Source of the DNA: Pelomyxa schiedti
Lineage: Eukaryota; Protista; Evosea
Assembly: GCA_020536535.1 (NCBI GenBank)
Contig: JAHLWZ010000150.1
Coordinates: forward strand, 7,477-71,476
DNA: 64,000 nucleotides
Reading direction: 5' to 3'
Part shown: piece by piece, positions 17,070-49,700 of the stretch
Position numbering within the stretch: the first letter of the stretch is position 1
Layout: each line of letters begins with the position of its first letter
Notes under the pieces: model-generated
What the model saw: the letters and a program-made list of their open reading frames with translations, nothing else
What the model was told of the DNA's origin: nothing
The model's database searches: none
Position numbers and translations under genes: made by a program

Positions 17070-17169
17070 NNNNNNNNNNNNNNNNNNNNNNNNNNNNNNN
17101 NNNNNNNNNNNNNNNNNNNNNNNNNNNNNNNNNNNNNNNNNNNNNNNNNNNNNNNNNNNNNNNNNNNNN
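17070..17169. other. Assembly gap (100 N)
   Basis: Run of N. Confidence 1.
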
Positions 17170-19105
17170 AACAAGGAGTTGGCCAGAGAGAACAAGGAGT
17201 TGCTGAAAAAGAACCTGGCACTGGCTAGTGAGAAAGAAGAGCTAAAAAGTTTAAATAAAACCCTTGCGACATCTCTCGACGAATTGAACAACCTGTGTAA
17301 GGTAGACTACATCTTTCACATTCTTTCGTTTTTACGTAGTTGTTTATTTTATTTTATTTTTTTAATTTTATTTTGTATTTGCAGAGTGAAAGAGACCAAA
17401 ATGCCAGGAGACTATCTCTTTGCGCAAAGAAAACCGAGGAAACTACAACAGGTTGTAGTGCATCATACTTCAGTGACAGGACAGAACAAAAAGCACGCCG
17501 ACAGTACCTTAGAACAATGAAGGAGATGGAGGAGGAAGGTCCAATTAAACTGTGGACTCAAAGCCCACTTTGGAATAAGCTTACAACTGGTATATCCGAA
17601 TTCACGGGCAATGGTGTGCATTGTGACAGTCCATAGGAGAAAGTGAGAAAAAGCATCTACAACCAGCCTTTTCTGAGTTAATCACTTCTCTTGAGAAAGG
17701 GAGCTGTGGGCTTATCCATTTACAAGATACTCATTCAACGTTGTTGCATTCCTTTCTTGTGGTTTTTTGACTGCGTTTAAAGAGGATTCAAATTGGGGAA
17801 GCATCATGTGAAGCCAGGTGCTGTAGGCTTGATGACTGCCCGGGCTCATCCTATCCCACTGGAAGTCGCTTTCTTTGTGGAGTTAAAATCAAAGAAGCTC
17901 CCTATAGAAAAGGCTGTTGGACAAGTAGTGCGATATTGTGTAATTTTGATGAAGCAATGTCCTCCCGTTTTCCGGGAACGGGTAAGGTTCTGCTCCTACT
18001 CGATATTTTTGTAACACATTGAAGGCAGTTGGGGTTGCAACAAATGGCAGGGACACACGGCTTATTGAAGTCAGTCGGGACGATATCGAAACTCAAAATT
18101 ACCAGGTACTTAACATTTAGCAACCTGTACTTTAACACTTCAAGTGCTTCAACTTTGATGAGTTCCCTTTGGCGCAACTGCTTGGTACTTTGCTGAGCCA
18201 AAACAAGGAATTCCTTCTTGGTGCAAATTCATTGGAACCCTTTGAATTCAATGGGGAAACCATCTTGCCTGAACGTCCTCTGTCGCATGGAGCAACTAGC
18301 AGAGTATTTGTAGGTGTGTACTCAATGTGTACTTTGCCCAACTTGACTGACTATATCCAGACAATTACAAGAAAGTCTGGAAAGTTGCCAGAGACGAGGC
18401 ACTTTTTCCTGTTCTGGAGAAAGAGGCTGATTTGTTACAACGGTTTTTTCGGGTGTAGTACCAGAAGTTTGTCAACCCTATTAACGCCAACATTAAAAGG
18501 AACATATTACAGGCGTACCAACTGTAACCGGGCAAGTGAGTCACGGATTTTGCATGGAAGAATGTGGCACTCTCCTGAGAGAAAACAGGTTACTTCTGCG
18601 AGGACTCAGCCATCAATATGTGGATACCCTCAAGCTAGTTGGCGCTTTGAATTATGTTCACAGAGATTTGAGACCTGCAAATGTGTGCTAAGCAAATTAT
18701 TTTGCCTTGTTCATAATAACACACCAGCTTCTTGTGTGCAATGGAAAAGCATTGATCATTGACTGGGGATTTGCTGTATGCTGTGGCATTAACGGATACC
18801 AGGGGACTATCCGCTATGCCTCCTTCAGAGTTTGGAAGCAACTATCAGCAAACCGGTTTACTGTTGGAACTCCGACTGACGTGCAACTGGCAGACGATCT
18901 CGAGTCCCTTGTTCTTTCCATTGCCGCACTAAGTGTTGCAGGTTATGACAAGACGGTGCTTGGTACCCAACTCCAGGACATTTGGACCAATGTTTGGGAT
19001 CCAATTTTCAGTCCAACAAGTGCCTGGAGCCCTCTTCTGGATGCAGCCCGAACCTGTAACTATTCTGAGCTCCACCGTCTGTTTGACGCCCTTCTTTTTC
19101 CATAG
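17170..19105 (+). CDS. Coiled-coil + PD-(D/E)XK-like domain + protein kinase (Crinkler-associated / fungal-type kinase architecture); 5' end lies in the assembly gap
   Basis: KELARENKELLKKNLAL heptads; VKPG..FFVELKSKK..AVGQVVRY..GVATNGRD; LSHGATSRVF, MEECG, VHRDLRPAN, IIDWGFA, GTIRYAS, DDLESLV. Confidence 0.75.
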
Positions 19106-19174
19106 TCTTGCGAAGAACCCAATTCACTTCACAGTAATTCTACAGAATGAAGAATATTGTGTTGTCAAATTCTA

Positions 19175-20599
19175 TCAGTGACCATTTGTGTCCCTTAGCA
19201 AAGAGTCGAGTTCTGCTTGGACTTGGGGGTTGGTGATGAAGGAGTTGCCTAGATACAGGCACTGTGACTGAGGCATGAAGGTGTCACAAGTAGTGATGGC
19301 TGAGTCTTCTGATGTAATCAGCTCCACTGTGCACCCGTGGACGAGTGCCATTGGACAACCTGCCAATTATCGTCACTATCAGAAAGGCGATTGTTGTACC
19401 TACGCTCATCCGCTTCACCCATAACTATTTGTGCCATAGAACTGAGGTTGTCAGCGAGGGCCTGATTTGTGATGCGGAGAGGCCTACCAAATAGATCGTT
19501 GCACTCGAGTTTGTTTACAATTGATCTATATGAAAATAAAAGGGAAAACGGAAAAAAGTTTAGTCAGTGGCATACTTGATTCCACACACAGCTACGGCGA
19601 GGCCAGACGTACCTTTTCTAAGAGGCTGAACTGTGCTATCTGTCATTATAACTCCAACATGCACTCCCCACCTCCGATAGATTTCTGGTAAAGACCATCT
19701 TAAGCTTCAAAACAGAGAAAAGGGCAAGAAAATACCTCTCCAAAGTTTAAGGACAGTTAAATCCGTATTCCTTGGAAATCTAATGAAGTTTCCTTCACCA
19801 GAATTGCTCCGGTCAATACCAGAGTTAGGTAAAATGAGTCCCTTTCTCATGGTGGTGATTACATGTGGGGCATCTAGCTTAATCTTAATATGGAATGTTG
19901 GTTAATTGGTTACATGCATCCGACAATAGAGTCTGCATCATCCAAAATCGCCTGAATAAATTCAGGAGGCAGCATAGTCCTGCAAGATAAGTATTAGTTA
20001 GTTAAGGAGGGANNNNNNNNNNNNNNNNNNNNNNNNNNNNNNNNNNNNNNNNNNNNNNNNNNNNNNNNNNNNNNNNNNNNNNNNNNNNNNNNNNNNNNNN
20101 NNNNNNNNNNNNGGAATGTTGGTTAATTGGTTACATGCATCCGACAATAGAGTCTGCATCATCCAAAATCGCCTGAATAAATTCAGGAGGCAGCATAGTC
20201 CTGCAAGATAAGTATTAGTTAGTTAAGGAGGGACGGGGAAAGAGGCACTTTGTAGCCAGTGGTGCAGCCAGTGGTGAAGTCACTTTGATTGAAGCAAGCG
20301 AGAACCTCTCCCCCTCAATGAGGCCACATACTTTGCTTGACACCACAATCACGTCTCCTTCCTTTGTTTCCACGAACCTACAACTTTAAAAAACCCACAC
20401 GTAACAAACAAACAAACAAACAAACAAAAAAACCATTCAAAAAAAAGGGAAAAAAATGCCCCCCAAACGAAACAAACAAACCAACCTGAGGAGCGGCAAC
20501 AGACCCAGAATCAATAGCGCGTTGTAGTACCTCCAGCAGATCGTCGCCCTCGTGTAACACACGCCACGCCTTAACTCCGCTGCAACACACCCGCGACAT
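19175..20599 (-). CDS. cofE: CofE-family F420-0:gamma-glutamyl ligase homologue, with spliceosomal introns
   Basis: Spliced motifs in order: EGDDLLEVL, EGDVIVVSSKVCGLIEG, PPEFIQAILDDA, LILPNSGIDRSNSGEG, VGVIMTDSTVQPLRKGTSGLAVAVCG, DLFGRPLRITNQALADNL, IVMGEADERCPMALVHG. These match the F420_ligase family pattern along the whole length. Confidence 0.85.
20013..20112. other. Assembly gap (100 N) flanked by an identical 121-bp direct repeat (19892-20012 and 20113-20233)
   Basis: Run of N with the same sequence on both sides; likely unmerged contig overlap. Confidence 0.95.
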
Positions 20600-20853: not shown

Positions 20854-22077
20854 TCAGTGGAGAATTCTGAACCTACCACTAATAGGGTAGTGGTCCGAGA
20901 GTTCCATTGCGGTTTTGGAGCCACCCTTGCGTGATGGAAGGCTGAAGCTTGTGTTGTCCTGAACGGCAACTTCCAGGGGCAAAATGTTTCGGACAAAGAA
21001 GTAGTCTAGCCTGTAGCTTTCGGTGCCGTGTGAGAAGAACTGCTTCAGGGAGTTCCTGCTGTCACTGGTCAGGAAGAGTTGGTTTGTTGTTGTCACTGCT
21101 ACAGTAGAGGTTGAGGGCGGAATTTCCGGCTTTATTGCAGTTGTAGTTGTGGTAGTTGCCTCACTATTTTCTGCAATGCTGGAACTTGTTTCCACTGTCG
21201 TGGTACTTGATGTGACTTCCGCACCGGTTGTTCCTCCAGTTTCTGCTGAAGGTGTACTGTGCGCCATTGGTACAGCACTTGGCGGAGAGAAGGTAAGTGG
21301 GTGAAGCATTCGAAATGCATCACGAAGACCCTTCGAGGCTAGCTGCTCACACATAATGGAGTACTGCCCAGTATAAGCGGTGTAGTCAAGGTTGAGTTCA
21401 GCAATGTTCATATCACCCATCAGAATCACCGGCTCGTTCCCGTCCGGAATCACAGACAGAACTTTCCGCATGTTCTCCTCCCTGCAGTCCAGAATCTCCC
21501 TAGCATTTGGGTTCGAGTAGCAGTCTGAGCCAACAACAGCAAATCCGGCCTGCAAATGTGTGACAATGATTCTGACACCGTCAACAACGACGCTAGAAAC
21601 GCCTTTGCAAGCAAAAGCGTCCCAGCCCGCCAGCTTCTCGAATTTCACAAACGTGCATTTGTCGAATGCCTTGGGCTTCTTGCACAAAAGCAGGATCCCG
21701 CCTCCCATAAGCGGCGAAAACGCGCTCCCGCGGAAGGCCAGCATCGAGTTGTACAGCCGCGCGACCGATCGCGCGATCGAGTCGGCCAGCGACGTGCTCC
21801 AGACCTCGCACAGGGCAACGAAATCGGCCCCCGACGACATAATTAGTCGCGAGATCGCGGCGGCGCGGTCGGCGTCGTAGTAGGCGAGATTCCGCGCGAA
21901 CGTGGCCGCGAAGGTCCCCGCGAAGAGGTGCGTGTTCAGAAACAGGAACCTCCGTATTTCGACGTCGTTGTCGTCGCCGCTGCCGCTGTCATTTCCAGGT
22001 TTTTTAGGACTGAGGAGGCTCTCGTTGGCGCAACTTGACGCTCCGAAGGATGAGCCTCCTGAAGGAGAGGCCGCCAT
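20854..22077 (-). CDS. Endonuclease/exonuclease/phosphatase family enzyme, sphingomyelinase C / neutral SMase-like; intronless
   Basis: Single ORF with FLNTHLF, VALCEVW, KGV, VTHLQA, LMGDMNI, RLDYFFV, SDHYP; Thr/Ser-rich insert before the last motifs. Confidence 0.85.
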   Translation of the reverse strand: MAASPSGGSSFGASSCANESLLSPKKPGNDSGSGDDNDVEIRRFLFLNTHLFAGTFAATFARNLAYYDADRAAAISRLIMSSGADFVALCEVWSTSLADSIARSVARLYNSMLAFRGSAFSPLMGGGILLLCKKPKAFDKCTFVKFEKLAGWDAFACKGVSSVVVDGVRIIVTHLQAGFAVVGSDCYSNPNAREILDCREENMRKVLSVIPDGNEPVILMGDMNIAELNLDYTAYTGQYSIMCEQLASKGLRDAFRMLHPLTFSPPSAVPMAHSTPSAETGGTTGAEVTSSTTTVETSSSIAENSEATTTTTTAIKPEIPPSTSTVAVTTTNQLFLTSDSRNSLKQFFSHGTESYRLDYFFVRNILPLEVAVQDNTSFSLPSRKGGSKTAMELSDHYPISGRFRILH

Positions 22078-22243
22078 TTGTTCGGTGAAGTTTTGATTTT
22101 CGTTCGAACGGAAGTTTGTGATTGTTTTATGCAAAAAATGTTCAGGTCTAGACCGAGGGGCCAAGGGGAAGTCAAATGTACAATTGGGGACTTTATTTAT
22201 CTTGCAAGTGGTGTATTGGGGTGAGGTATTGAGGGAGGGCCGG

Positions 22244-23080
22244 TTACTCTTGATACTCAAATACTAGTTTATACAGGTCTGGTTCCAGGTGAGCCAGTTG
22301 CACATGGCAGTTTCGTGCATGCCATGATGCATTCAACCCATCAATAAAGCTGTTGAGATTGGATAGTGTTGACCCGTATGAGACATGCCCGACACTGGCT
22401 CCGGTTCCGCCACCAAGAGCTCCTCCAGCAACTGTATAATATTATATTAGGGAAAAAGGAAAACCAAGACACAAAACACAGGGTGTTAAATGGTACGTAG
22501 ATGTCTGTGATCTTCTTATATTGGGTGTTTTTTGTTTTTTTGTATTGCTTTGAAGCATACGTAAAATTCCAGCAGAAAAAGGAATCCCCATTCCAAGGGT
22601 AGCTATACCCACTACCGCAGCCACTGGAGCTGCCACCAGAGTGCCCACGAGAGTGCCGTACTTTGCTCCCTGTTTTAGTACATTAACTAACGAGCCATGT
22701 AACTGCGGCTTTTTATAATACATTACCGTTGATTTGGGGTGGCACTCGTGCACAATGTGGTTTACTTTGCTGATGATGTCATTGTACTCAGCTGGCAAAA
22801 CCAAAAGGCGCAGCAACTGCGGCGGCATCGAGTTGTCAAACAGTTGCCCTGTCGTTCGACTAACCACTATTGTCTTGGTGACGACTAGTCCGGGTTGCAG
22901 CATGGACCGGTTTTCAACGGTTTTTTTTTTTTTTGTGCTTGGCCAAGTTGAAAAACATTCTTTGGCTTTTGATGGCACCAAGTCGATCAGGACTTGCAAA
23001 TGCGGTTCCCTTTCCTGTTGCATAATAGCCGCTGCGTTTTGTGGGCTGTCTTGTGGCAAGACATTTGTTGCAAGCAACAA
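22244..23080 (-). CDS. Hypothetical protein with hydrophobic hairpin, weakly ERF4/Golgin-A7-like
   Basis: FDNSMPPQLLRLLVLPAEYNDIISKVN, Gly/Ala-rich hydrophobic stretch, last exon LNSFIDGLNASWHARNC. Confidence 0.4.
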
Positions 23081-46763: not shown

Positions 46764-49700
46764 TCAAACTAGTGGAGAGGTATAAGTAAAACGTAGGCAG
46801 TGTGTAATAAGGTGGGGAGCATACCACATTTTTATATCAGTGCTTGTGTTGCTGCTTGGTTTGCTCCAATAGAGTTTGAACAACTCCAGGGGAGAATTCC
46901 GCACACAACGAAGAATACATGTCACAACAATAATGTTCAGATACAAACGTCTGTTGAACCTCCATCACTTTTGTTTTTACTTGGACCTATTTCTTCAGGG
47001 TGAGAGAGCTAAAATCGGGAGAAGCATGTTTACATTGTGTTCTTGTCCTCCCTCATACCACCACATGAGAATAATCTCTTCAAATCGTAGTAGAATCTGC
47101 ATTCCTATTAATATCGAGTGCACTTGAAGTCAAAAATCTACCGCTGTGTACACATTCCCTGGAGCAGAGGCAATCCACATGTTGTCACTTGTTGGATTCT
47201 CAATTTCATAGCTCACACCGCCAAGCAAGACTTGTTGTGTAACGCCAGGATCACACTTATGTACCCGAGCTATGGAATTTAAATCGCCACTGCTTGGTTT
47301 CCATGAACCGGGATTGGTTAGGATGGCTTGTGGTGGGCTGGTTGAAAGCACGGCATAGTATATTTGGGGAGGTGATGCTGAATCAGGTGAGAGAATTGTT
47401 ACATGCATCTTCTAGGTGTGAAGTTAGTTTTTTTCTTAGTCATTATTTGGGATGTGTACATCGAGCCAAGATCTCCATTTTGAGAAATGGTTAATAACTG
47501 CCAGTCTCCAATCACTAGTAGTGTAAGACTGATTAGGAAAAGGTTTTTCACACACAAATCGGGATTTGAAGCACATAATGGTTGCAAGTGGGGAACAAAT
47601 CTGGAAAATGGTGACAAATAAGGACAAAAGGAAGAAAAACGAACTTTGAATATTGAGAGCACTTTTGTGAGGTGTTGTACCAGTGTTTGCAAGTCATTGC
47701 GCAGACATTGACTTCTTTCACTGAGAGATATCTTCGAAGGTTTTGTCAGGATGATTTGGGGGAATGGAAGGCAACTTGAAAACTATCCTTAAAATATTTA
47801 CAGGTAAACATTGTACATGCTGAGAATTTTCATTTGAAGTATTACCCCCAGCAGCTGCAAGTAAGTGGCTGGTTGTGGAAAAAGGAGGTGTGTGATTTGT
47901 TGCAACCTAAAGCTTTAGTTCAAAAAAAGGAGGGCTTTCCAACAAGCAATTTTTTTTTTAGAAATGAGTAGGGATTAACCTTGAAGGGTGTGGCATAGGG
48001 ATACCACATGCTGGGTTGTTTTGGGTCCAGTCCAACGTGAAGTAAACTGCTCACAGCAGAGTCAAAACCATGGGCCGCTAGATGCAATAGTGAATATTTT
48101 GCTCCAGGAGTGTTGAGATCCACTCCCGGAATCGAAATTGTATGTGCAAACAACTGTGGACAAAACATTAACAGATGCAATAAAGTCCATCCACTTGTGG
48201 TGGCAGCACTCAAAGTACCACGAAGGTGATTGGCATATGCGGCGGCAGCAGAAGCCGCAGCAGCCTGACCTGCCTCAGCTGCCGCTTTCACAGAAAGGTC
48301 ATACTTGCTGATAGCAGCTATGAAGTCCCGTACAAGCACAAAGTCCCCAGTGGCCATGGCCCAATAAAGGGCATTTCTTCCAGCCCGGTCTCTCATCGCC
48401 ACATCAATGCCATTGCATGACAACATGAAGCGCACGACTTCACTGTTTTTGTTTTTGACTGCCATAATCAAGGGTGTCTCCCCGTCATACGAGCAACTGG
48501 CATTGATGTTTGCACCAAGGGAAATTATATCCCTTGCCACTGTGGCTGATTTAGCATAATGCAGTGGTGTTTTCCCCCACTGGTCCAGCCGTGTTGCGTC
48601 ACAACGTGTGCGTGCGGCACTGTTTACAATCATATCCAGAACATCTGTCATATTATTTTCAACCAGGGAAAAAAGCAAGTCCGTGATATTGGATCCAAGG
48701 GAGATCAACTTGGGGATAATGTTAAAATGTTTACTGTGCATTGCAATTAATGCGGCCGCTTCCAAGAAAATTGGATGAAGTACTTCCGGGTGCTCAAGGA
48801 GTAAATCCACAATGTGGTAGGAAGAGGGAGAATTTAGTCGCCAGACGGCAAGTTGTAATGCGGTTTCGGCATCCTCAGCCAAAGTATTAGGCCTCACAGT
48901 TGGTGCTGAAAGCAAAATTTTGACGGCATTTTCGTCATAATTTCGCACTGCATGATGGAGAGGGGTAAAGTTATGGCACAATAAATTTGGGTCAAGCCGA
49001 TCACACTGGAGCAGAACCTGCATGGTGGAGTAGTTGTGCCATTTAACTGCAATATGCAAAATGGACTCCCCCACAGTGGAGAGGATATTTGGGTCAATTG
49101 ACGGTGTCTCAAGTCCGACTTTAATAAACTCGGTAGCAAGAGGATCATTTAGCGATGCTAAAGCGTGGAAGATGGTAAACCCAAGAGAACTTTGCACAGT
49201 AACCGAAGCTGGGTAACGTTGACATAGGATCTGGAAGTGCGGAAGGGATCTAGCGTATATGTATGTATAATGTGCAACACAGCGACCTCTTGTGTCGCGG
49301 TTGCAGAGTACTTGTTTTGCTCCATGTGATATAAGTGCATCAAGGCACTCTACATTCCCGGCCTGTGGAGCGAATTAACATAGAATCACACACAAAGACT
49401 GCTCACAAGGATGGCTAGATGACCAACATTCAAAAAGGAGTGATTTTGAACAGGAGGTATATCCTGCGTAGAATCTCTGTTACAATAAAAATAGAAGAAA
49501 AGGTACTAACAGAAGTAGCCGATCGGTCCAAGAGTAGTTTAAGCATCTCTAAGTTACCCGTGAGGCAAGCAAGGTGAATGGGTGTGTTCCCCTTGTCATC
49601 TGGATCCAATACTGATTGAGGGGTTGCCTTGACGCTTGCAACGGGAATATTCCCCGTGAAAGCTGCAGAAAATAACTGTGGTAGGTTTAGATTGATAACC

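Follow-up and report, generated by a model that had tools for sequence, protein, structure and literature searches.

The window, a stretch of 64,000 nucleotides from a contig of the anaerobic amoeba Pelomyxa schiedti, carries a CofE-family gene that is a native, spliced and transcribed nuclear gene of the amoeba and no contamination. We hold, with somewhat better than even confidence, that this native gene goes back to one old acquisition of an archaeal family member of the kind that we call type B, and that a folate- or pteroate-type substrate is likelier for its product than F420-0. A literature search found no paper on the amoeba gene itself.

The gene lies on the minus strand and runs from 20599 to 19175, with seven exons that join into an open frame of 840 nt and 279 aa (model C). 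Exon 1 (20505..20599) starts with the ATG at 20599-20597 and encodes the N-terminal GDDL region, and it is followed by intron 1 (20378..20504; 127 nt, GT..AG, phase 2), which holds a (CAAA)n/A-rich low-complexity tract. This junction has two in-frame options, five to six residues apart, and we keep as an alternative a model D in which exon 1 ends at 20486 and intron 1 occupies 20485-20362 in phase 0, as it does in the eukaryote locus L004. Exon 2 (20249..20377; GDVIVVSSKVCGLIEGE...) matches positions 27-57 of the PF01996 profile, and intron 2 (20201..20248; 48 nt, GT..AG, phase 2) agrees in alignment column and phase with L004 and with a second eukaryote locus, L007. Exon 3 appears twice in the assembly, at 20139..20200 to the right of a gap and, in identical form, at 19918..19979 to the left of it, where it is contiguous with exon 4. 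Intron 3 (19874..19917; 44 nt, phase 1) probably runs from GC to AG, since its position and phase match those of a GT-AG intron in L004 and since this reading scores 8 bits above the GT-AG alternative. That alternative (model A, with the donor GTCGGA) was rejected because it scores below model C, and model B, with an acceptor farther downstream, was rejected for its lower score and because it deletes PHVITTMR, residues that are matched by Pfam. Exon 4 (19736..19873; PHVITT...NSGIDRSN..., PF01996 positions 88-129) contains an Asp that aligns with the metal ligand D109 of Archaeoglobus fulgidus CofE. The next intron, intron 4 (19685..19735; 51 nt, GT..AG, phase 1), contains a TGA whose reading as a sense codon was rejected, because this is a clean GT-AG intron whose removal is seen in RNA. 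Exon 5 (19576..19684; positions 135-168) encodes GVIMTDSTVQPLRKG, in which the type B signature replaces DTxGRxxRxG, and it is separated by intron 5 (19526..19575; 50 nt, GT..AG, phase 2) from exon 6 (19404..19525; DLFGRPLRIT..ALADNL..VMGEADE, positions 177-209). Intron 6 (19360..19403; 44 nt, GT..AG, phase 1) recurs at an identical site and in identical phase in L004 and L007; at that site the gut-metagenome locus L006 shows a GTAAG read-through. Finally, exon 7 (19175..19359) encodes RCPMALVHG...MPQSQCLYLG, followed by a C-terminal tail that is common to the eukaryote clade described below, and closes with the stop codon TGA at 19177-19175.

The two copies of exon 3 flank an assembly gap of 100 N (20013..20112). 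This gap is an artefact of scaffolding, placed between two contig ends with a 121-nt overlap. Specifically, 19892-20012 and 20113-20233 are identical 121-nt copies that both abut the Ns, and the assembly pipeline has been described as SPAdes with k=121 plus P_RNA_scaffolder (PMC8887013). An independent Logan contig (run X4) runs without interruption from 19100-19891 into 20113-20392, thereby skipping 221 nt with an overlap of 121. Since this contig joins 19891 to 20113, the gap and one of the two copies are artefactual, and the gene has one exon 3, which keeps the frame.

The introns have the marks of spliceosomal introns: their GT/GC-AG ends restore one frame, a splice is seen in RNA, and their positions are common to other eukaryotes. 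A single-cell RNA contig (X1) covers 19591-19684 and 19736-19819 and skips exactly the 51 nt of intron 4 (CT..AC on the plus strand); the RNA support consists of this one contig of depth 2.9, which covers the intron 4 junction among the six introns, with exon 1 outside its coverage. The Pelomyxa gene and L004 agree in alignment column and phase for introns 2-6, and L007 has introns 2 and 6 in common with them; between the Pelomyxa locus and L004 we found no synteny beyond the gene itself. Because one splice is seen in RNA and intron positions are common to other eukaryote loci, we exclude contamination, in agreement with the earlier note, which had called this a nuclear gene rather than prokaryotic contamination. 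Its count of at least five GT-AG introns holds for five and has to be extended by a sixth intron, the probable GC-AG one. Of the checks that it had proposed, the one for a chimeric scaffold ended in favour of the gene, the X4 contig showing the sequence to be continuous, and the one for spliced RNA confirmed intron 4, the remaining introns lying outside the RNA contig.

The spliced protein is, as had been claimed from the DNA, a full-length member of the F420_ligase family (PF01996/COG1478) with the listed motifs in order, namely GDDL, GDVIVVSSKV..IEGE, NSGIDRSN, the exon 5 motif given above, DLFGRPLRIT..ALADNL and VMGEADERCP. Exons 2, 4, 5 and 6 match PF01996 separately and colinearly (14.9, 27.5, 25.8 and 33.7 bits) over profile positions 27-209, and an HMM made from 85 prokaryotic members of the family gives the whole protein 251.8 bits (E = 3e-78). 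Residues 20-253 align with an archaeal homologue at 34% identity (E = 3e-44), and BLASTP against archaeal members gives E = 3e-44 to 5e-51. Alignments with PDB structures show that the metal-ligand positions of A. fulgidus CofE are kept in the amoeba protein, as the Asp of GID, the Asp and Ser of TDS (with Ser in place of T151) and the Glu of MGE, so that the ligase chemistry should persist. The metal-binding residues of the archaeal enzyme, which we take to be D109, D150, T151 and E208, were reportedly listed by Nocek et al. in 2007. For TIGR01916, the equivalog model of CofE (F420-0:L-glutamate ligase) with a curated cutoff of 180.65 bits, the Pelomyxa exons sum to ~99 bits and the whole protein is predicted to reach ~160 bits, an estimate from a regression on six calibrators. 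Two orthologues lie marginally above the cutoff (P0123, from Mastigamoeba, with 201.9 bits and P0131 with 180.8 bits), and the ranges are 262-300 bits for type A proteins, 174-231 for type B and 181-202 for the amoeba orthologues.

Compared with A. fulgidus CofE (AF_2256; PDB 2PHN, 2G9I, 7ULD-7ULF, 8G8P), which represents type A, the amoeba proteins share the family and the single-domain length, and 92% of the archaeal chain is covered in its alignment with the orthologue from Mastigamoeba (E = 1e-44). Given the same Asp/Asp/Glu positions, the same NTP-dependent addition of L-glutamate would be expected. Differences lie in the motif DTNGRCFRRG, which reads DSTVQPLRKG in Pelomyxa, and in the C-terminus, where ..DLF(R) of the archaeal enzyme stands against P..QCLYLG plus the tail in Pelomyxa, whose gene also has six introns. 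In A. fulgidus CofE the deazaflavin is clamped by the residues F92, G153-C155 and R234 (PMC10861534). None of these is kept in the Pelomyxa protein, where F92 is replaced by His, G153-C155 by VQP and R234, which lacks an Arg counterpart, by M/P. The same departures are found in all archaeal type B proteins and thus separate type B from type A, not the amoeba from archaea.

Orthologues were found in Mastigamoeba balamuthi (P0123, in EukProt) and at the eukaryote loci L004, L006, L007 and L008, of which L007 adjoins a eukaryotic uridine kinase-UPRT gene. The Mastigamoeba protein, m51a1_g3585 (EukProt EP00727_P007738), is the best full-length match (40% identity across 262 residues); it has the type B motifs and the C-terminal tail of the Pelomyxa protein, and its gene span implies introns. 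It is deeply diverged, with DSVVHALRRG and PRV where Pelomyxa has DSTVQPLRKG and PHV. Its description as a 'putative f420-dependent oxidoreductase' is an automatic annotation, and a literature search found no study of it. An exhaustive search with exon 4 gave six matches in all, one of which (P0122) was dismissed as a low-complexity chance match. The Pelomyxa gene groups with Mastigamoeba and with three or more lineages of uncultured eukaryotes in a clade supported at 100/100 in three trees, and in a profile search a gap separates the members of this clade (at least 263 bits) from archaeal proteins (at most 241 bits). Members of the family have been described in other eukaryotes without known F420 synthesis, namely one labelled 'putative F420:gamma-glutamyl ligase' from Spironucleus salmonicida (PMC3916229) and an expressed 'CofE-AF' protein in Histomonas meleagridis (PMC6250841). 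Together with the annotated Mastigamoeba orthologue, these are precedents for a eukaryotic CofE-family gene. Neither was among the top matches of our two database searches, which included EukProt and in which Mastigamoeba was the single named eukaryote among the top matches; their absence there sets them apart and suggests that they were probably acquired separately from the amoeba gene.

The eukaryote clade falls inside the archaeal type B branch, on a long stem of 0.6-0.9 substitutions per site. Its nearest prokaryotic relatives are CofE-annotated type B proteins of Methanoregula, Methanolinea and Heimdall-, Thor-, Odin-, Frey- and Promethearchaeota, which are 33-38% identical to the Pelomyxa protein and 36-44% to that of Mastigamoeba. 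Archaeal type B proteins and the eukaryote clade share the motif DS..[PA].R.GT.G and a P...C.Y C-terminus, whereas the archaeal genes lack introns and stand in operons with Pterin_bind, FolD and SHMT, and the eukaryotic proteins have the long stem and the added tail. The type B backbone is a polytomy, and no sister group of the eukaryote clade was resolved even when 18 metagenomic type B sequences were added, so that the donor search proposed in the earlier note led to a branch but not to a sister within it. Methanomicrobiales, Methanoregula among them, group apart in a clade of their own (100/99). Forcing eukaryotes and Methanomicrobiales together costs 19.8 lnL, with an AU p of 0.039 for 17 Methanomicrobiales rows and of 0.417 for 3 rows, in trees that represent the symbiont by its Methanomicrobiales relatives and not by its own protein; an origin from the symbiont lineage thus appears weakly disfavoured. 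The link to methanogen symbionts that the earlier note had drawn is therefore not upheld: a recent transfer from the Methanoregula endosymbiont does not fit a separate Methanomicrobiales clade and orthologues in Mastigamoeba and other eukaryotes. Since the clade includes Mastigamoeba and has introns in common, any acquisition predates a symbiosis of the Pelomyxa type, and the gene would appear to be an old acquisition of archaeal type rather than a recent gift from a methanogen symbiont. One old transfer of an archaeal type B member would have been followed by inheritance within the eukaryote lineage, Mastigamoeba balamuthi included, and the acquired copy would have gained and kept its spliceosomal introns.

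We then compared gene neighbourhoods of the two archaeal types in 80 metagenome loci, of which 37 type B and 21 type A loci entered the counts. A Pterin_bind (DHPS-like) gene is adjacent in 23/37 type B loci, often with FolD and SHMT, versus 0/21 type A loci (p = 7.6e-7), and the reverse holds for CofD, with 8/21 in type A versus 0/37 in type B (p = 1e-4). Seven or more type B lineages show the link to Pterin_bind. Methanoregula and Methanoregulaceae have the order SHMT-FolD-Pterin_bind-ligase, in which Pterin_bind and the ligase gene share 4 nt; in two Heimdall lineages the ligase adjoins or overlaps Pterin_bind, and in Freyarchaeum Pterin_bind is a divergent neighbour. The Thor gene lies in an MtrH/MtrA cluster. 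LLM-ligase-CofD-CofC served as the type A control neighbourhood. Thaumarchaeal type B-like genes, which come from known F420 producers, lack the pterin linkage, and the neighbourhoods of loci L001-L003 were uninformative. A literature search found no paper on the linkage of archaeal type B genes to folP.

A functional precedent for a folate-type reading may be seen in Chlamydia trachomatis CT611 (FolC2, NCBIfam TIGR04132). This COG1478 protein belongs to an organism that lacks F420, its gene clusters with those for folate, and it complements a folC mutant of E. coli (PMC1971073). In our set, the protein most like TIGR04132 (P0126) carries the motif DSxxxPLRxG. CT611 belongs to another subfamily: against the TIGR04132 cutoff of 350 bits (Chlamydiae), the amoeba orthologues reach 105-106 bits and the Pelomyxa exons sum to ~72, less than they do on TIGR01916. 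The Pelomyxa protein may thus work like FolC2 without being a member of the FolC2 subfamily. Because type B genes are coupled to Pterin_bind, FolD and SHMT and type A genes to cofD and cofC, and because CT611 replaces FolC, we favour a pteroate- or folate-like cofactor over F420 as the substrate. The earlier idea of an F420-type substrate fits the neighbours of type B relatives poorly, while the caution with which it had been put was right. In the mechanism that we propose, the single-domain, nucleotide-dependent L-glutamate ligase encoded by the gene would use GTP or another NTP to activate the carboxylate of its substrate as an acyl-phosphate and then add L-glutamate; the most likely substrate would be a pteroate- or folate-like cofactor, giving a DHFS/FPGS-like activity, with F420-0 less likely. 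The enzyme is probably cytosolic, since it is without an N-terminal extension. The Pterin_bind neighbours of type B genes could serve methanopterin instead of folate. Canonical FPGS is present in Archamoebae, is mostly targeted to the mitochondrion-related organelle and has two copies in Pelomyxidae (PMC10711303). The CofE-family gene therefore fills no obvious hole, and we rejected the explanation that it replaces a missing FolC/FPGS.

Alternatively, the protein could be a true F420-0/F420-n:L-glutamate ligase, with which an amoeba unable to make F420 extends deazaflavin from symbionts or ingested archaea and bacteria, thereby trapping or tuning it for host enzymes, a possibility that we take seriously but think unlikely. 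The family is named for the F420 reaction, methanogen type B proteins are annotated as CofE, the catalytic residues are conserved, and the orthologues from Mastigamoeba and L008 score above the equivalog cutoff of TIGR01916. In Methanomicrobiales-like loci, moreover, cofC and the type B gene are neighbours on opposite strands (10/19), and such archaea, if type B is their only copy, must rely on it as their actual F420 ligase. The host itself carries an F420-rich Methanoregula symbiont (PMC10579272). However, cofD is adjacent to type A genes and never to type B, the deazaflavin-clamping residues of the A. fulgidus enzyme are not kept, and an orthologue is present in Mastigamoeba. That amoeba is not known to harbour a methanogen symbiont. 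A 2021 review, finally, found no evidence of eukaryotes making F420 as a redox cofactor (PMC8498797). It seems rather doubtful to us that either the amoeba uses symbiont or prey F420, once glutamylated, as a redox cofactor, or type B is the missing archaeal DHFS/FPGS, borrowed by anaerobic amoebae.

An improbable explanation is that the protein took on a new function after its transfer into eukaryotes, as a glutamate (or other amide-forming) ligase on a different carboxylate substrate. The long stem, the tail peculiar to the eukaryote clade, an estimated score of the Pelomyxa copy below the CofE cutoff and the presence of canonical FPGS with no F420 pathway known are consistent with such a change, but the clade keeps nearly all residues that are conserved in archaeal type B proteins, and nothing points positively to another substrate. 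Highly improbable is a chimeric assembly or a functionless, decaying pseudogene: although a scaffold gap interrupts the gene, intron 1 breaks the Logan contigs, RNA depth is low and the terminal branch of the Pelomyxa copy is longer than that of L004 (0.5-0.7 vs 0.23-0.28), the gap resolves cleanly, the frame is open across seven exons, splicing is seen in RNA, the catalytic residues are intact, and the L004 orthologue has the same structure. Least credible of all is vertical descent from an Asgard-like archaeal ancestor of eukaryotes, with retention in few anaerobic lineages and loss elsewhere, for which one tree that nests the eukaryote clade among Asgard-rich type B lineages and introns old enough to be common to deep eukaryote sub-clades could be cited, but which needs massive parallel loss, given a single named eukaryote among the top matches, and faces the polytomy of the type B backbone.

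If the reading of an old archaeal type B acquisition with a folate-type substrate is true, what looked like a symbiont-to-host transfer of an F420 enzyme would be a eukaryotic gene family that came from archaea long ago and has been passed down vertically, which would call for caution with gene-transfer claims in symbiont-bearing protists. Eukaryotes use FO in photolyases, and should the amoeba use F420, it would be the first eukaryote shown to do so beyond this FO. In archaea, the annotation 'coenzyme F420-0:L-glutamate ligase' would split into two branches, one with cofD/cofC and the other with DHPS-like, FolD and SHMT partners, and type B would become a candidate, open to testing, for the enzyme that glutamylates folates or pterins in archaea without FolC, bringing thousands of automatic annotations into question. 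The amoeba protein, in turn, would be an assay target for the role of a second, non-homologous glutamate ligase beside the canonical FPGS.

The ligase gene lies on the minus strand, with its start codon at 20599 and its stop codon at 19175, exactly the two end coordinates given in the earlier note. Joining exons at GT/GC-AG boundaries and verifying the frame via translation, we obtained a best model of seven exons (20599-20505, 20377-20249, 19979-19918, 19873-19736, 19684-19576, 19525-19404 and 19359-19175, all -), separated by six introns of 127, 48, 44, 51, 50 and 44 nt, whose open frame of 840 nt encodes 279 aa. The product is a member of PF01996/COG1478. Exons 2, 4, 5 and 6 match PF01996 separately and in colinear order (27-57, 88-129, 135-168 and 177-209 of a profile of length 218) and, in the same exon-wise scan, also match TIGR01916; the spliced protein scores 251.8 bits (E = 3e-78) with an HMM made from 85 prokaryotic members and aligns across residues 20-253 with a Cenarchaeum protein at 34% identity (E = 3e-44). 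The colinear matches and the HMM score bear out the earlier claim of a full-length F420_ligase-family protein, all six motifs cited for it occur in the spliced product in the order given, and the observation stands with small corrections. Its N-terminus is not extended relative to archaeal homologues. The protein is a possible member of the CofE equivalog (TIGR01916) and falls outside the FolC2 subfamily of Chlamydia folate ligases (TIGR04132), though it may work in a similar way.

The assembly places 100 Ns (20013-20112) inside the gene, flanked by identical 121-nt copies (19892-20012 and 20113-20233) that both terminate exactly at the Ns. Every sampled word of the stretch is present in sequencing run X4, in which one 2275-nt Logan contig covers 19100-19891 and then 20113-20392, skipping 221 positions, with 121 letters that fit either side. 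Since this contig joins 19891 to 20113, the gap and one copy are absent from the real DNA: exon 3 and the adjoining intron parts are duplicated on paper only, and the ligase frame is continuous. The Pelomyxa schiedti assembly was made with SPAdes (k up to 121) followed by P_RNA_scaffolder (PMC8887013), a pipeline that would yield exactly this 121-nt signature; RNA read pairs would then have bridged both contigs within the ligase gene. Intron 1 holds low-complexity sequence, (CAAA)n and A-rich (20393-20488), on both sides of which independent Logan contigs stop, so that the link between exons 1 and 2 comes from this assembly only. A second 100-N gap (17070-17169), unlike the one in the ligase gene, is without identical flanking copies.

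Pelomyxa schiedti, or a close relative, is the probable source of the stretch, which is present in single-cell RNA-seq runs labelled 'protist metagenome' and in one further run of the same study; the 121-nt overlap, the density of introns and the GC-AG introns match what papers on P. schiedti describe, and the best named orthologue comes from Mastigamoeba. An RNA contig from one of the single-cell runs (X1; 178 nt, depth 2.9) spans 19591-19684 and 19736-19819 and omits the 51 nt between, which end in CT..AC on the plus strand, that is GT..AG on the gene strand, and are exactly intron 4. RNA contigs from two other runs (X2, 1596 nt; X3, 618 nt) stop at ~19162, 13 nt off the ligase stop codon (region 19100-19162), and probably represent the 3' end of the neighbouring convergent gene on the plus strand, which has an ORF ending at 19105. 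Directly upstream of the ligase, a continuous ORF of 468 aa (20854-22260, -) belongs to the endonuclease/exonuclease/phosphatase family (PF03372, E = 2.6e-10) and is intron-free in a genome otherwise rich in introns, and a 425-aa ankyrin-repeat ORF occupies 47923-49197 (-; PF12796, E = 9e-40).

Taking exon 4 as the query of an exhaustive phmmer search, we found P0121, a 95-aa ORF of 74% identity whose frame runs on through introns. Its 135-kb metagenome contig (L004) places it beside a gene for a Saf4/Yju2 splicing factor. As built here, the L004 ligase gene encodes 302 aa and has six introns of 35-52 nt. Introns 2-6 occupy the same alignment columns, in the same phases, in both genes, and intron 1 matches in column too if the window ligase takes an alternative phase-0 junction. 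Intron 3 of L004 is GT-AG exactly where the window ligase requires GC-AG, a class reported to make up 1.59% of P. schiedti introns (PMC8887013); the GC-AG reading gives DSIVGYAPHVITT against DKIIGYGPHVITT in L004 and beats the GT-AG alternative by 8 bits. At intron 2 the types are reversed, GC-AG in L004 (4818-4863) and GT-AG in the window.

Further orthologues were found. The best full-length match is Mastigamoeba balamuthi m51a1_g3585 (P0123; 280 aa), 40% identical and with the C-terminal tail in common; EukProt carries an annotation for it. On a 67% GC eukaryote contig (L007), beside a gene for a uridine kinase-UPRT fusion, lies an orthologue of 281 aa whose two introns share the columns and phases of window introns 2 and 6, and a 1.1-kb JGI contig (L008; 31% GC, intron-free) encodes a 286-aa clade member. 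A gut-metagenome group (P0125 and relatives, L006) is without introns 3-5 and runs into a GTAAG intron where the window gene has intron 6. Searching with an alignment profile of the eukaryote clade separated ~12 members (≥263 bits) from all other proteins (≤241 bits), Mastigamoeba being the sole named eukaryote among them. Our literature search found no paper that studies the eukaryotic CofE-like genes, the Mastigamoeba orthologue included.

In three maximum-likelihood trees (LG+C20+F+G4), all eleven eukaryote rows form one clade (support 100/100, 100/100 and 100/99), with the window ligase sister to L004. This clade is nested within type B, one of two branches of CofE-annotated proteins, which we defined by DS..[PA].R.GT.G (DTNGRCFRRG in Archaeoglobus fulgidus CofE, Af-CofE) together with a P...C.Y C-terminus, and which takes in Asgard lineages, Methanomicrobiales, some Methanobacteriota, Thaumarchaeota and Chloroflexota. 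The type B backbone is a polytomy, with no supported sister group of the eukaryotes even when 18 metagenomic type B sequences are added. A separate clade (100/99) holds the Methanomicrobiales, with Methanoregula, Methanoregulaceae and Methanolinea among them. A tree constrained to unite Methanomicrobiales and eukaryotes is worse by 19.8 log-likelihood units (AU p = 0.039), while the same constraint with three Methanomicrobiales rows gives AU p = 0.417, from too few rows to inform. This separation, the Mastigamoeba orthologue and the common introns argue against transfer from a present Methanoregula symbiont, and the symbiont/F420 account proposed earlier is not supported. The splice in RNA and the intron positions common to L004 are evidence of a real eukaryotic gene. 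The earlier reading of it as nuclear, archaeal-type and laterally derived is supported, but with an old acquisition. Taken together, the data support one old acquisition from a donor that was probably archaeal.

The metal ligands of Af-CofE, which we take to be D109, D150, T151 and E208 (after Nocek et al. 2007), are unchanged in the amoeba ligase except for Ser in place of T151. With these positions kept, the protein is predicted to be an NTP-dependent ligase that should still add L-glutamate. The deazaflavin ring is gripped in Af-CofE by F92, G153-C155 and R234 (PMC10861534), to which His, VQP and Met/Pro correspond in the amoeba ligase. These departures are common to all type B proteins, so the function of type B as a whole becomes the telling question. 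TIGR01916 scores are 262-300 bits for type A, 174-231 for type B and 181-202 for the amoeba orthologues.

In archaeal and metagenome loci (L009-L015 and L016-L095), genes with the type A motif D[ST]xGRxxRxG stand with cofD, cofC and LLM genes, and those with the type B motif DS..[PA].R.G directly before or after a Pterin_bind gene of DHPS-like type, in many cases together with FolD and SHMT. On a single strand, in this order, Methanoregula sp. and a Methanoregulaceae MAG carry SHMT, FolD, Pterin_bind and the type B ligase, the last two overlapping by 4 nt; in two Heimdallarchaeota lineages Pterin_bind directly follows or overlaps the ligase, in Freyarchaeum it is the divergent neighbour, and a Thorarchaeote has an MtrH-MtrA-MtrH cluster upstream of it. 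The type A control, Ancylobacter, has a luciferase-like monooxygenase, the ligase, CofD and CofC. We then surveyed 80 metagenome loci, typing the ligase by motif and scanning the flanks with HMMs made from the neighbours just listed. Pterin_bind was adjacent in 23 of 37 non-thaumarchaeal type B loci and CofD in none; the counts were 0 and 8 for 21 type A loci, and 0 and 0 for 22 of thaumarchaeal type. Type B and type A differ in both neighbours (Fisher tests, p = 7.6e-7 for Pterin_bind and 1.1e-4 for CofD), 19 of the 37 type B loci being Methanomicrobiales-like and hence non-independent; the Pterin_bind link nonetheless recurs across seven or more distinct lineages of type B. Within 2.5 kb, 25 of the 37 loci have Pterin_bind and 14 have FolD and SHMT. 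No paper on this linkage in archaea was found in the literature. Natural fusions join the ligase domain to an F420_oxidored/ProC-like domain (PF03807) or to cytidine-deaminase-like domains (PF00383 and PF08211, e.g. Methanothrix) (P0213, P0228; P0319, P0324, P0330; P0065, P0076, P0087), and several single-domain Nitrosopumilus ligases carry the source name 'cytidine deaminase', probably inherited from such fusions. One further protein (P0124; 288 aa, 1805-nt ENA contig) is a twofold repeat of 140 residues from the N-terminus of a type A ligase, and probably reflects an artefact of assembly or of tandem duplication.

A folate-acting COG1478 enzyme is known: Chlamydia CT611/FolC2, encoded in a cluster of folate genes, rescues an E. 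coli folC mutant (PMC1971073; PMC5041015). This precedent, the Pterin_bind linkage and the TIGR01916 scores favour a pteroate- or folate-like substrate for type B and hence for the amoeba ligase; a folate/pterin-like substrate rather than F420 is our tentative hypothesis, of somewhat less than even probability. The neighbouring Pterin_bind protein could instead serve methanopterin synthesis. That the amoeba enzyme acts on F420 is the less likely of the two readings. According to a 2021 review, there is no evidence that eukaryotes make F420 as a redox cofactor (PMC8498797), a statement with which use of scavenged F420 by the host would be compatible. In 10 of the 19 Methanomicrobiales-like loci cofC is the immediate neighbour of the type B gene, on the opposite strand, which counts against treating the folate reading as settled; should these archaea be without a type A CofE, their F420 ligase would have to be type B. 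Archamoebae possess canonical folylpolyglutamate synthase, most of it directed to the mitochondrion-related organelle, with two copies in Pelomyxidae (PMC10711303), so a CofE-family ligase fills no obvious gap; its role may be cytosolic or dihydrofolate-synthase-like. The most useful by-product of this analysis is the split into types A and B among archaeal proteins annotated as 'coenzyme F420-0:L-glutamate ligase', of which the type B branch may be a mis-annotated archaeal folate/pterin glutamyl ligase.
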